A stretch of 62,448 nt of DNA, filler included, from Platydemus manokwari (taxonomy: Eukaryota): NCBI GenBank assembly GCA_037951405.1. It is 5 parts of 5 records of this genome, joined end to end, with 100 filler letters (N's around TTAATTAATTAA, not from the genome) between each part and the next. Parts side by side here need not be neighbours in the genome. Positions count along the whole stretch, not along the records: positions 14,983 to 26,910 come from JBBMOY010387777.1; 4 more parts are not named here. The stretch is one strand, 5' to 3'. A program made the position numbers and the translations under genes. The notes under the pieces are model-generated. The model was not told where the DNA came from. It saw only the letters and a program-made list of their open reading frames with translations, and did not search any database. Each line of letters starts with the position of its first letter. Position 1 is the first letter of the stretch. Positions 16,930 to 26,910 of the stretch are shown here, one piece after another.

Positions 16930-18060
16930 ATGTTGGCTCCAAATATAGGCGAAAATCGTTGCTCACCTATTCTGAATTACTGACGTTTTTTCAGCGTCGG
17001 TAGCAATCGTAATTTCTAAAGATAAAGCGATTCATGAGGTTTTTGTCAGGTGAGTAGGCCGGCTGCTTTAATAGAGACACGCAATGTTCTTCAAGCCAAA
17101 GCCGAATTAACTGTGCTGCCTGATGTCTGGAATTGACATGCTGAATGACCATTTTCCAAGCAGGTAGTCTTGTTTGAAATTCAAATCATATTCTGTAGGA
17201 ATCGTAAGGTATCTCTTAGCGTTGATGGATCCACCGTCTTGAAGAATTTCGAAATACGTGAGTGATTTTGCATAGTTGCTATCAACGGTAATCAGAACTC
17301 TGCGATCAGCTATTGTCCGCCCAGCAATAGTTGAACGATCACCTGTGTCATAAACCCAAACACAGTTGCATTCTTTTGAAGGTATGTCGTTAAAGTAAAT
17401 CAATTTTTCATCGTTCACAATGATCTTTTTCTTCTTGCCGAATAAATATTCAACATTTCTTGACAGCAAATGACTCTGATTCTCTTTTTATTACCCGTCA
17501 GAATGTGAGGAACTCATCTGCTGCAAAGTGACTTCTTTCAAAGTTCCTGTTTCAATATGCGGCGAACACTCGTTTCTTTAATGTCAGTGACTCTTGAAAT
17601 GGCTGGACAGCGTAAGTCACAATCTTCTTCTATCATTTTACACATAATAATGACATTCTCGTCTGCAGTACTCGTTCATGGTCTTCCTGAACCTTCTTTT
17701 CGCTTAAAAATTGCTCGCTGTTCTCCTGCAAACTCTTTGGTAATAGGCTGTACTCGCTAAAGGCTGTCAACGTTCTCTGCTCCCTAACTTTCGACAAGAA
17801 ATGGAAGGATTTCGATAGCCGAAAAGTTGTTTCGTGTTAAAGTTGCTAAGAAGAAATTTATGTCGCATTGCTTTGCCTTCATCTTTTAGGCTAAATCATT
17901 TAACCAACTCTAATCGATTTATTTAAATTTAAATCTTGAAATTTCAAGTTTTGTTATTGATCTACCTTATAAAATTTCCTACGAAAGATCTGCCTAGAAT
18001 TTTAACTTAGATCTTCAGATATTTTCTTACTGATAAAAACGAAAAATTTTTTGGCCCCTA
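16930..18060 (-). mobile_element. Decayed mariner (DD34D) transposon, family A
   Basis: Transposase pseudogene from ATG 17882 (MKAKQCDINFFLATLTR...GSGRP...SVRRIL...R*VPHILT...IIVNDEK...QHVNSRH...QPAYSPDKNLMN). 34 residues separate the mutated second and third catalytic positions; there are stops and frameshifts. One terminus TAGGGGCCAAAAAATTTTTCG is flanked by TA at 18061-62; the other TIR was not found. Confidence 0.88.
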
Positions 18061-23102: not shown

Positions 23103-23561
23103 ATGGAAGAAGAAAAAGAATATGATTTGACTCAAGAAGAGGAAGAATATTACGATAGCCTGACATATGCTCAAAAAGCAGAATTTGCGACCGTTATCAG
23201 TAAACCAATGGCACCAGAAAAGTTAGGCAAAAAAATAATGAAACTTTTATCAAGTGCCAGTAAGCACAAAAAGTTGATTTTAGGTGTTAAATCAGTACCA
23301 AAGGCAATTAAGAAAAAGAAAAACGGAATTGTTGTGATTGCTGGAGATGTAACACCTATTGACGTTGTTATTCATATTCCAAAATTATGTGAAGCTGCAA
23401 ATATTCCTTATTGCTTTTTACCCTGTAGAAGAGATGTAGGAATCGCTTGTGGATCAAAAAAGTCTATTGCGATTGTAATGATTGAATCAGATGAACATTA
23501 CACAGCTAAATTCAATAAATTAAGTAAAAAAGTTATCAACTTACCACTTCCTATTGTATAA
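23103..23561 (+). CDS. NHP2: H/ACA snoRNP subunit NHP2-like protein (L7Ae family), 152 aa
   Basis: ATG at 23103 (the ORF track started at an upstream TTG). NHP2 signature motifs: ISKPMA, GVKxV, GIVVIAGDVTPIDV..HIP.LCE..NIPY, D.G.A.GSK, and C-terminal LPLP. CDS uninterrupted; possible 45-nt 5'UTR intron 23049-23093; AATAAA at 23561-23566. Confidence 0.92.
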   Translation: MEEEKEYDLTQEEEEYYDSLTYAQKAEFATVISKPMAPEKLGKKIMKLLSSASKHKKLILGVKSVPKAIKKKKNGIVVIAGDVTPIDVVIHIPKLCEAANIPYCFLPCRRDVGIACGSKKSIAIVMIESDEHYTAKFNKLSKKVINLPLPIV

Positions 23562-23660
23562 ATAAATATTATAAAAATGTCTTATTTTGAAATTCTTATT
23601 TTGTAAAATAATCAATATTTTTAAATATTCAAATGCGTAGTGATATTTGATTAAATACAA

Positions 23661-24218
23661 ATGTCAATTGTATCCCCTAATGGGAGTAAAATTCTGAATC
23701 CTGTTTTTGACTCCAATTCAAATGAAAATCAGATATCTGTATTTGGTGATTTAAATAATAGTTCGTGTAGAAGAAAGCGTTCCAGAAGTAGACGAAAATC
23801 TAGACGTAGGTCTCGTAGTCGATGTTCTATGAAACGGAGGAAAAGAAGGCGGTCTGTAAAAAGGCGAACTTGTGGTATTAGAAAGCGACGACGAAAGTCA
23901 AGAAAAAGATCTTGTAGATCTGCGAAAAGACGTAAAGTCAGAAGAAGGTCGAGATCATCTTGTAAAAAGCGAGGGTGTACTTGGCGTGAAAGTAATTTTG
24001 CTAAAATTAAGCAAGGTAAATGTTGTAAAAAACGACTGAAGTACAAGCTTTCACCATATGCATTATGGGTGAAACAAAATATGAAAAGTTTAAAAGGAAA
24101 AGGTGATTCTTCACAGATAATGCGAGCCTTGGCGAAAAGCTGGAAATGTTTATCACCGATGGACAAAGCCAAATTTTATCATAAAGCAGCTGCCAACAAA
24201 AAGCGAAAATGCAAATAA
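23661..24218 (+). CDS. Protamine-like Arg/Ser/Cys-rich protein with C-terminal HMG box, 185 aa
   Basis: aa 1-35 is a neutral/acidic leader. aa 36-106 has 32 Arg + 12 Lys of 71 residues, RS dipeptides and regularly spaced Cys. The C-terminus LSPYALWVKQN...QIMRALAKSWKCLSPMDKAKFYHKA matches the HMG-box pattern (S.Y.L....N ... I.K.L...WK.LS..EK..Y...A). Intact intronless ORF. Confidence 0.88.
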   Translation: MSIVSPNGSKILNPVFDSNSNENQISVFGDLNNSSCRRKRSRSRRKSRRRSRSRCSMKRRKRRRSVKRRTCGIRKRRRKSRKRSCRSAKRRKVRRRSRSSCKKRGCTWRESNFAKIKQGKCCKKRLKYKLSPYALWVKQNMKSLKGKGDSSQIMRALAKSWKCLSPMDKAKFYHKAAANKKRKCK

Positions 24219-26521
24219 TATTGTATTCAATTTATTTTTATTTTGATTGAAAAACCAATTATTTTCGTCAATATATAACTTGACTTATTTGGTTGGTTTA
24301 TAAATTTGATGATCGTATTCGCTTCAATCCCGATATACCCTGGTGCTAGATATGCTAGATCTTAGAAATAAAATCTTTTACTTTTCTATCAATGCACACA
24401 GGATTTATCTGGGTAGATGTTATGCGAATCAAGAATTAAAATAAATAAAATATTCAAAATTACCATTTTCCAAAGCATAATATGTGGTAAACTGAATTTA
24501 TAGTTGCTTAGTATTAGCTTGGCTTTTTAACAATGATATTAGAAATTTCCAAAACGTTCTATTGAAATTCTGTTCTTTTCTAACAACACCCAGAAATTTT
24601 TCGTATCCCAATTTTATTGTCATCGTTATTAACAGAAGAATCTGCAGCAAATGAGTAGCTATCTGATGTGTTGTTATGCATAAACTACTATGTGCATACA
24701 TTTGCACACTAACTTAGAGAAAATCCAATTTGTTTCATCGATAGGTAGGAAAATATATCGATATTTTGTAGAAAGAAATCATTTTATTTTTGAGATGTAA
24801 TGAACGGCTTAGTATTTCGTCATAGAGCACAGAATAATCTTAAATTGTAACTAGATTAAATTTTCAATGGCTGATTTGCCAGGAAATAATGTTATTATGT
24901 ATTACCTGAATTATCACATTGATTAACAGTTTCTTTTGTAGAGATAGAACCTTAAGTTTAAAACTGGTTTAAGATGATAATTTAAATACGTTTAATTTTC
25001 TTAATTGGCTAAATCTGTTGAATATTTGTTATGATTTTCGATGAATATTTTATTTCACAATTAATAATGAATATATAAACATTAAATAGCTGGTTGAGAA
25101 TCTAATCGTGCTTGTGTTCAGGTAAATTTATTTAAAATTTTTCCTTAATTACCATTACAGCTTCTAAACAAAACAGATTTTTATAATCACTTTTCACATA
25201 TTCACTGTTGATAAATAATTATATTTAAACTTACTTCTTTGTTTATAAAAGTAAATCATAAAAGTTTATGAATTATAATGAATTGTTCGAATCTTACATA
25301 TTTCTGACTTGATCCTCTTTGATCAAACTAGTCAGGTACAACCCATTTTCTTACTACTCAGCCAGGTTTGGTTATATATTACTAATCTTAAAATTCATAA
25401 ATGAATGATAATAATTGAAAATCGAGTTTTCAATTAATTCCGGATTAATACTGACTTAAAAAAATGCTAGTTGAATTTAGTGCCAGCATATAATTTAAAT
25501 TTGTATACTGAATTAAAAAAAGGGCAACATTCATACATTTTTATTAAACATAATATTATAAATAGAGTGATTGTTTTGTGCAGTATCAAATAAAAGTGAG
25601 GAGAGTTTTAAGAATAATAAAATAAAGAATTTGCTTATAATATTATGGTTTATCAAAAAAAATTTATCAATATAATTATATTGATGGGACAATATTTCTA
25701 TTTAGAACACTAAGGAAGACTAGAATCGGTATTTATTGCAAGAAAAAGAAAACTTAATCGTTAATATCAATGAAGAAGATATTAAAACGCATTTTATTAG
25801 TTCAAAATTTGTCATTTGTAATAATAATCGATCAGGTTGATCAGGAAAATTTCACGCAGAGATAATGAGAATTTTCGTTTTATGATTTGGTACGGCACTT
25901 GATTATTCAATTACAATGAAAAGGAATCGCCACATTTATTTATTTTGTATAATAATCACTAGCAGTGAAATTTAAAATCACTGCTTCGGAAGAACTATGA
26001 ATATAAAGATAAACCAGAGATTTTTATCAAACTTAATCGTTAGCAGTGTTCAACAAATAACTGATCATAGCGAGTGTATTGTTTTAATAAATCAATTTTA
26101 TGACTTTGAATACTAAAAATATCTGAATAATGACTAATTAAACCAAGTTACATGAGAAAATTACTACCAACAACGTGGGTGGGTTTGTGAATTATAATAA
26201 ATCTGCATGATAATAATTAAATAACTTTATAAAAATAGTTTAATTTATCTTCTATAAAATATTATTGTCCAAAGTCGCCAGCACACCATTATCTTTCACA
26301 ATTTGTACCAAAAGGCTTGGAAGGGAGAGCTAAAAATGTGCTGCAGAAGGAATTGTGGATAAATTGTGCAAATAAGTAACTCGATTTCGACAATTTATCA
26401 TCCTTTTAATCTGATAATGAGATTTTGATGTATTATACGATTATATAATAATGATATAATTTTATAATAGAATAAAGCTCCAATATATAGTAGTGGTAAA
26501 ATATTAAAAAAAAATACCAGC

Positions 26522-26630
26522 TGTTGGAGTTTCGTGTCTTGTACTATTTAGATATTATGTGAGTTCGACTACCGGTTGAAGCGCGATGTCAATCCGGTAG
26601 GTGCGTGCTCCTATATTATTATAAACAAAT
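26522..26630. repeat. Dispersed repeat, copy 2, with internal hairpin
   Basis: Homologous to 18305-18410; contains the inverted repeat CTACCGG-TTGA...TCAA-T-CCGGTAG (26569-26600). Confidence 0.75.
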
Positions 26631-26910
26631 GAGAATTCAAAACAAATAACAAACTATAAAATATATTTACCCTTATAACAAGTGTTAAAATACAAGCAAA
26701 TTATTTTCGCAAACAACCCGAAAATCAGTTTACTCACCACACAGATTAAAAAAGATATTCTCAACAAGGGAAGGCTCCGATAGCGAACCTCCTTTGCGTT
26801 GATATATAATTTATAAATATAAATATATATTTTATAATATGGGCGGGCCCTGTTATTACTTCCTTTTTATCAATTATTAATTTGACAGCTCTGTATACCT
26901 TTTAATTTCA

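Follow-up and report, generated by a model that had tools for sequence, protein, structure and literature searches.

Drosophila is the only genus in which HMG-box sperm nuclear basic proteins (SNBPs) have been characterised as a family, and one testis-specific candidate has come from Nasonia (PMC13148410); SNBP sequences in general are available for very few arthropods (PMC12216123, PMC11607694). The fly proteins are shorter than 200 aa, have a pI above 10 and usually contain one HMG box (PMC9917458), and they have a truncated box and an enrichment in Cys in common (PMC5133442). Arg and Lys are about equally frequent in these proteins, which lack a protamine-grade Arg block (PMC5133442). Arg clusters with Ser and SRPK-type sites are found in the protamines of mammals (P1/P2), in galline and in cephalopod and bee protamines (PMC12216123, PMC5133442, PMC13327716). 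Mst77F and protamine P2 lose a Cys-free N-terminus (PMC5133442), and N-terminal precursor cleavage is common among invertebrate protamines (PMC12216123). In Nasonia vitripennis, LOC103316943, a non-dipteran arthropod gene that we compared by its description only, codes for a testis-specific protein whose C-terminal part is an HMG box. This protein has been regarded as a possible SNBP or transition protein of low abundance; its basicity is given as lower than that of PL proteins, and the description mentions no block rich in Arg (PMC13148410).

We analyzed an uninterrupted 185-codon ORF located at 23661..24218 on the plus strand of the window (the whole stretch of DNA studied, 62,448 nucleotides including filler), within the piece from JBBMOY010387777.1. 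In this piece, whose A+T content is 72%, 0.003 open frames of 185 codons are expected by chance on both strands. The predicted protein has three parts, namely a 35-aa non-basic leader, a 71-aa Arg/Lys/Ser block and a C-terminal HMG box. The lengths of the leader and block and the Arg and Arg+Lys shares of the block (45% and 62%) given by a first-pass annotation were all reproduced on recount, as were its total of 10 Cys and its six block Cys at residues 36, 55, 71, 85, 101 and 106. The features of the gene and its immediate surroundings are as follows.

23103..23561, plus strand: NHP2-like gene (H/ACA RNP subunit, L7Ae family); uninterrupted ORF, Pfam Ribosomal_L7Ae 73.7 bits
23557..23577, plus strand: TATAAA motifs (at 23557 and 23570), putative core promoter of the target gene, suggested by motif scan
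23661..23765, plus strand: leader, codons 1-35; Asn/Ser-rich, non-basic, predicted disordered (pLDDT 37-45)
23766..23978, plus strand: basic block, codons 36-106; Arg/Lys/Ser polycation, predicted disordered
23979..24035, plus strand: conserved linker TWRES.FAKIKQ..CCK.R, codons 107-125, from the alignment with the orthologue on contig L001 (see below); contains the Cys pair C121/C122
24036..24218, plus strand: HMG box, codons 126-185 plus stop; helices 132-144, 150-163 and 166-183
24299..24372, plus strand: candidate polyadenylation signals (TATAAA at 24299, AATAAA at 24367), 80-150 nt past the stop, suggested by motif scan

The whole protein has a mass of 22 kDa, a pI of 11.9, a net charge of +63 and about 20% Arg, and its Cys are at positions 36, 55, 71, 85, 101, 106, 121, 122, 163 and 184. 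An in-frame TAA is located two codons 5΄ of the ATG, and the frame contains no further ATG before M57, which lies within the basic block; under a single-exon model without splicing, the leader is therefore part of the protein. Residues 1-127 are predicted to be disordered in the full-length model (pLDDT below 50). The leader contains no Arg, one Lys and no Cys (pI 4.05, net charge –2), and thus 10 of the 10 Cys of the protein fall outside it, as is the case for the 10 Cys of Mst77F, all of which lie outside the N-terminal segment (PMC5133442). The leader may be a pro-segment, whose cleavage we infer purely by analogy with the N-terminal pro-segments of protamine P2, squid protamine and bee P2 (PMC12216123, PMC5133442, PMC13327716). 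A mitochondrial TFAM/Abf2-like role was set aside because the leader, being acidic and without Arg, does not appear presequence-like.

The basic block (residues 36-106) consists of 45.1% Arg, 17% Lys, 18% Ser and 8.5% Cys, with 62.0% Arg+Lys and 0% Asp/Glu, and carries a net charge of +44 over 71 aa. Its Cys are evenly spaced, about every 16 residues (gaps of 19, 16, 14 and 16); spacing this even was obtained in approximately 0.3-0.5% of shuffles, in a test that was chosen post hoc. The first-pass annotation had regarded the block as a series of imperfect RRKSRxxSxSxC repeats. The motif fits residues 44-55 exactly, but no other stretch fits it and no tandem repeat exists at the DNA level. An origin of the block from a recent microsatellite or tandem repeat was likewise rejected, since five different Arg codons are used and TRF finds no tandem repeat in the DNA. 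When an RS domain is defined as at least 50 aa with an RS content above 40%, the window block, at 34%, is below the limit; together with its 17% Lys and 8.5% Cys, this composition places it nearer to protamines than to RS domains.

The HMG box was examined with the Pfam profiles of the superfamily (PF00505 and PF09011). The first-pass annotation had claimed a single HMG box and had suggested a check by HMMER profiles, in which HMG_box and HMG_box_2 were indeed matched, both below threshold, whereas Protamine_like was not matched at E ≤ 10. For HMG_box, the score was 24.9 bits (cutoff 25.4), with residues 130-182 aligned to profile positions 5-60 of 69, and HMG_box_2 scored 19.3 against a curated cutoff of 22.4; the corresponding scores of the L001 orthologue were 19.8 and 20.0. 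The score falls marginally under the cutoff because the box is short. An AlphaFold2 model, for which an alignment of 32 HMG stretches from the exhaustive search (alignment A3) was used as input, contains the three helices listed above with a core pLDDT above 90, and thus the box is real by its predicted fold. All 50 of the 50 best Foldseek rows against PDB were HMG boxes, and VIA-align superposed the model on HMG boxes with Z values of 8-9.2 and an rmsd of 1.3-1.8 Å over 58-63 residues. According to this model, the C-terminal 60 residues fold as an L-shaped three-helix HMG box.

The core of the family is present, as Y133, L135/W136, W161 and F172/Y173 align with conserved aromatic or hydrophobic positions, and W161 occupies the sole nearly invariant column of alignment A3. 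Ser131 is aligned to a Ser of yeast NHP6A, the top single-sequence match in PDB (E 0.02), and to the base-contacting Asn of SOX17. A Ser at this SOX/SRY/LEF Asn position, which is also found in HMGB1 box A and HMG-D, is what we take to mark the non-sequence-specific HMGB class, and on the basis of this residue the box is assigned to the HMGB type. Among the structural matches, identity was highest with the HMGB1 A box (27-30%). NHP6A also uses a basic N-terminal arm, of about 16 residues, compared with 71 residues and a charge of +44 here. Unlike HMGB-type boxes, however, the window protein has no acidic tail and five conserved Cys, the Pro residues of its N-terminal strand are replaced, and its helix 3 lacks at least 6 profile positions. 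This truncation results from the early end of the protein, three residues beyond profile position 60 (of 69), and the L001 protein has the same end. Cys accounts for 7.0% of the C-terminal 86 aa compared with 0.27% of the 32 other HMG stretches, which is a 26-fold enrichment.

HMMER, with the C-terminal 86 residues as the query, detected one close relative, P0007 (80% identical, 60 aa), which is located on L001, a 960-bp JGI metagenome contig. Frame 1 of L001:1-459 is an orthologue whose 5΄ end is cut off; 71 block residues are visible and the leader lies outside the contig. The Arg/Ser block, linker, HMG box and C-terminus are the same in kind and order, and the stop is at the same position. 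Over the last 81 codons, the two proteins are 79% identical, and the 71 nucleotide differences are distributed over codon positions 1, 2 and 3 as 14, 6 and 51 (dN 0.12, synonymous sites saturated). Since these substitutions follow the plus frame, the coding strand and frame are settled and a chance ORF is ruled out. An open frame of 147 aa on the opposite strand was rejected for the same reason, and it can be regarded as a by-product of purine-rich codons. Based on this comparison, we consider the gene to be a functional, single-exon, lineage-restricted animal gene under purifying selection.

Constraint is unevenly distributed between the two parts, as the HMG box is constrained and the basic block is fast-evolving. 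The composition of the block is kept in L001 but its sequence is not (39% identity, with an unreliable alignment). The 71 visible residues of the L001 block contain 44% Arg, 34% Ser, 10% Lys and 24 RS/SR dipeptides, with an RS content of 49%, and are free of Cys. Thus, nothing corresponds to Cys 55, 71, 85 and 101 in the L001 block, which is cut off at its 5΄ end near C36. The three-part fusion put forward at first pass was therefore upheld in its architecture, with the block, linker and box retained in the orthologue, but not in the periodic block Cys, which are absent there. By this alignment, the evenly spaced block Cys appear to be species-specific, in the sense that the orthologue does not share them. 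Conversely, C106, C121, C122, C163 and C184, together with H174, are invariant between the two proteins; C106 is the final residue of the block, just before the linker. These invariant residues could form a metal site, or a clamp from the N-strand to helix 3 that offsets the truncation of helix 3, and either would be an alternative to intermolecular disulfides.

No significant similarity was found between the 3΄ flanks of the window gene and of L001. A convergent ORF of 135 aa is present on the minus strand of L001 (537-944), 77 nt from the orthologue's stop codon, for which neither a Pfam family nor a homologue was found. This ORF is absent from the window piece, and downstream synteny is therefore not kept between the two organisms.

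Beyond this pair, the exhaustive HMMER search returned 38 matches at E ≤ 1e-3, and those inspected were HMG-box proteins. Among approximately 15 billion predicted proteins, there was no relative other than the one sister sequence and generic HMG boxes, and a full-length word-index search of 5.8 billion clusters gave no match at E ≤ 0.01. Scans with the orthologue alignment (two of metagenome contigs and one of viral contigs) detected no relatives. In hmmscan at E ≤ 10, only HMG_box and HMG_box_2 were matched, and no protamine family was, although very weak matches may be lost in the HMMER filters. The target protein, the window NHP2 and its relative P0001 had no record when looked up by exact sequence, and in the literature searched we found no fusion of an HMG box to an RS or protamine-like block described. 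Thus, the parts of the protein are of known kinds, but the combination of an Arg block with an HMG box is new.

The neighbouring NHP2-like gene is on the same strand and ends 99 nt before the ATG of the target gene. Its protein matches NHP2 entries in PDB at E values from 2e-30 to 2e-25, is 84% identical to P0001, and has its best named match in the spider mite Panonychus citri (42%); it belongs to the metazoan type, its nearest clusters being from arthropods and chordates. The match to the spider mite points weakly to an acariform mite as the host, and the G+C content of 28% would agree with such mites. AATAAA overlaps the stop codon of the NHP2-like gene. This signal and the TATAAA motifs suggest separate NHP2 and target transcripts, although TATAAA motifs are common in DNA of 72% A+T. 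The 99-nt gap also contains a 14-nt tandem duplication (23575-23603) and an upstream ORF of 5 codons (23634-23651). The pair forms an operon-like or very compact tandem arrangement in an otherwise gene-poor 12 kb.

We tentatively propose that the protein most likely packages male-germ-line DNA, as an SNBP or a transition-type protein; from its sequence, this reading comes close to even likelihood without reaching it. All of the features by which SNBPs of flies and wasps are nominated from sequence were found, namely a length below 200 aa, a pI above 10, one truncated HMG box, richness in Cys, an N-terminal segment free of Cys, a basic region that evolves fast and restriction to a lineage. By their published descriptions, the MST-HMG-box SNBPs of Drosophila (Mst35Ba/Bb, that is, ProtA/B, Mst77F, Prtl99C and Tpl94D) are similarly short and very basic with one truncated box, and the remainder of the protein is similarly disordered and fast-evolving (PMC5133442, PMC9917458). 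However, the window protein differs from them in its block of 45% Arg over 71 aa, in matching generic HMG_box only and not Protamine_like, and in having a box that is conserved and not fast-evolving. With protamines it shares Arg clusters with Ser and SRPK-type sites and, in the window species only, Cys within the Arg block. Unlike protamines, which are without a folded domain, it has a folded and conserved HMG box, its Arg content is about 20% over the whole protein and, at 45%, at the low end for protamines within the block, and its block Cys 55, 71, 85 and 101 are not conserved in the orthologue. A protamine is Arg-dominated and has no folded domain, a description that would apply to the window protein only after cleavage had set the block free.

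If the protein acts in this way, the HMG box would dock into the minor groove and bend DNA, and the tethered Arg-rich block would neutralise phosphate charge and bridge duplexes in the manner of protamines. SRPK-type phosphorylation at R-S/S-R sites might keep the block inactive until deposition, and disulfides between Cys might lock the DNA condensate. The leader, acidic and without Cys, might shield the block and be cleaved off by a protease, as happens in bee P2, Mst77F and protamine P2. Slightly less probable than germ-line packaging itself, and likewise tentative, is a more specific form of the proposal, in which a one-chain sperm protein composed of a protamine and an HMG box was recruited independently of MST-HMG in a non-dipteran and possibly non-insect, mite-like animal, with the even block Cys arising recently in one lineage. 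Such a protein would unite in a single polypeptide both known ways of packaging sperm DNA, namely a polycation of Arg clusters and a truncated HMG box. A parallel can be drawn with the protamines of eutherians and Planigale, in which Cys were gained convergently.

Several observations stand against a role in sperm. The block of the L001 orthologue is a classical RS domain free of Cys, as would also be expected of an SR-related nuclear protein. Provided that P0001 and L001 belong to the same organism, the HMG box is approximately as conserved as NHP2 (80% compared with 84%), and most fly SNBPs evolve faster than this (PMC9917458). Moreover, no sequence link to the fly MST-HMG/Protamine_like or protamine families was found in Pfam at E ≤ 10.

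A possible explanation, which we hold more doubtful than a role in sperm, is that the gene encodes a general nuclear SR-related HMG factor not specific to sperm. The RS block would then be a module for phospho-regulated nuclear import, speckle targeting or protein-RNA interaction, joined to an architectural chromatin-binding HMG box. The 49% RS content and 24 RS/SR dipeptides of the L001 block, above the 40% criterion, would suit such a role, and the constraint on the HMG box resembles that of a housekeeping gene. Together with the position of the gene 99 nt downstream of NHP2, itself a housekeeping gene, these features are about equally compatible with an SR-related HMG protein of somatic cells. 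RS-domain proteins such as the lamin B receptor are similarly disordered, with RS/SR dipeptides of the kind phosphorylated by SRPK1 (PMC4841541). On the other hand, Pfam scans revealed no RRM or other RNA-binding domain, and, unlike in SR/RS-domain proteins, the partner of the block is an HMG box that binds DNA. The window block also has no acidic residues and, as noted above, is enriched in Lys and Cys at an RS content of only 34%, which is the more protamine-like composition. Broad nuclear factors are usually widely conserved, whereas this family has two known members, and this reading would leave unexplained why Cys is enriched 26-fold in the box region. In the papers searched, the terms RS domain, HMG-box, SRPK1 and protamine were not found together; among the matches listed, HMG-box was missing where three of them co-occurred.

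It is improbable that the gene encodes a basic HMG protein of the nucleolus or of rDNA that is functionally coupled to NHP2, or transcribed together with it, and uses the Arg block as its nucleolar signal. Arg-rich stretches commonly direct proteins to nucleoli, and the two genes share a strand and are separated by a 99-nt gap only. However, separate transcripts are suggested by the promoter-like motifs and by the AATAAA that overlaps the NHP2 stop, no similarity to UBF or other nucleolar HMG proteins was found beyond the generic HMG fold, and the piece contains no snoRNA or other RNA family. A non-functional origin, as a chance ORF, a pseudogene or an ORF derived from a virus or transposon, is scarcely credible: biased purine-rich sequence also holds open the antisense frame and the piece contains transposon debris and a high-copy repeat, but the orthologue comparison (14/6/51 differences, dN 0.12, saturated dS and a conserved stop position) effectively refutes it, and viral contigs contain no relative and the gene has single-copy depth without variants.

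If the proposed sperm protein is confirmed as such, HMG boxes would have been recruited to sperm chromatin more than once, and the gene would represent a case in nature in which an HMG box and an Arg block of protamine grade are fused. As one orthologue has periodic Cys and the other does not, the contribution of disulfides to condensation could then be tested on the two. Should the protein prove to be a somatic HMG protein with an RS domain, the interest is more modest, as that of a domain combination not found described in the literature.

In a search for RNA runs, the stretch was found in one run alone (X1, of unrecorded type), with a depth that is flat (11-23) across genes and spacers; from this flatness X1 is taken to be genomic DNA, and it is probably the source sample. 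Within X1, the target gene shows no variants and has a depth equal to that of the flanking single-copy DNA. In the remainder of the 12-kb piece, no other recognisable gene was found, and Rfam at E ≤ 0.1 over the piece yielded neither an RNA family nor a snoRNA; a decayed DDE transposase and a high-copy repeat are present. At 16991-17469 on the minus strand, two adjacent ORF fragments lie in a G+C peak (0.39-0.42 compared with 0.25-0.30 around it), and one has a weak match to DDE_3 transposase (E 0.038). This region is probably a decayed Tc1/mariner-type element. A second X1 contig joins position 24451 to 25749 with 7 other letters between them, and the depths of the short and full forms are 5.8 and 12.6, respectively. 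The segment 24452-25748 thus looks like a 1.3-kb insertion/deletion allele, approximately 230 nt past the target stop; no clear terminal inverted repeats were found for it. Finally, the word depth in X1 climbs from approximately 13 to as much as 8555 over 26387-26900, and this high-copy repeat at the edge of the piece is probably the reason that the contig ends there.
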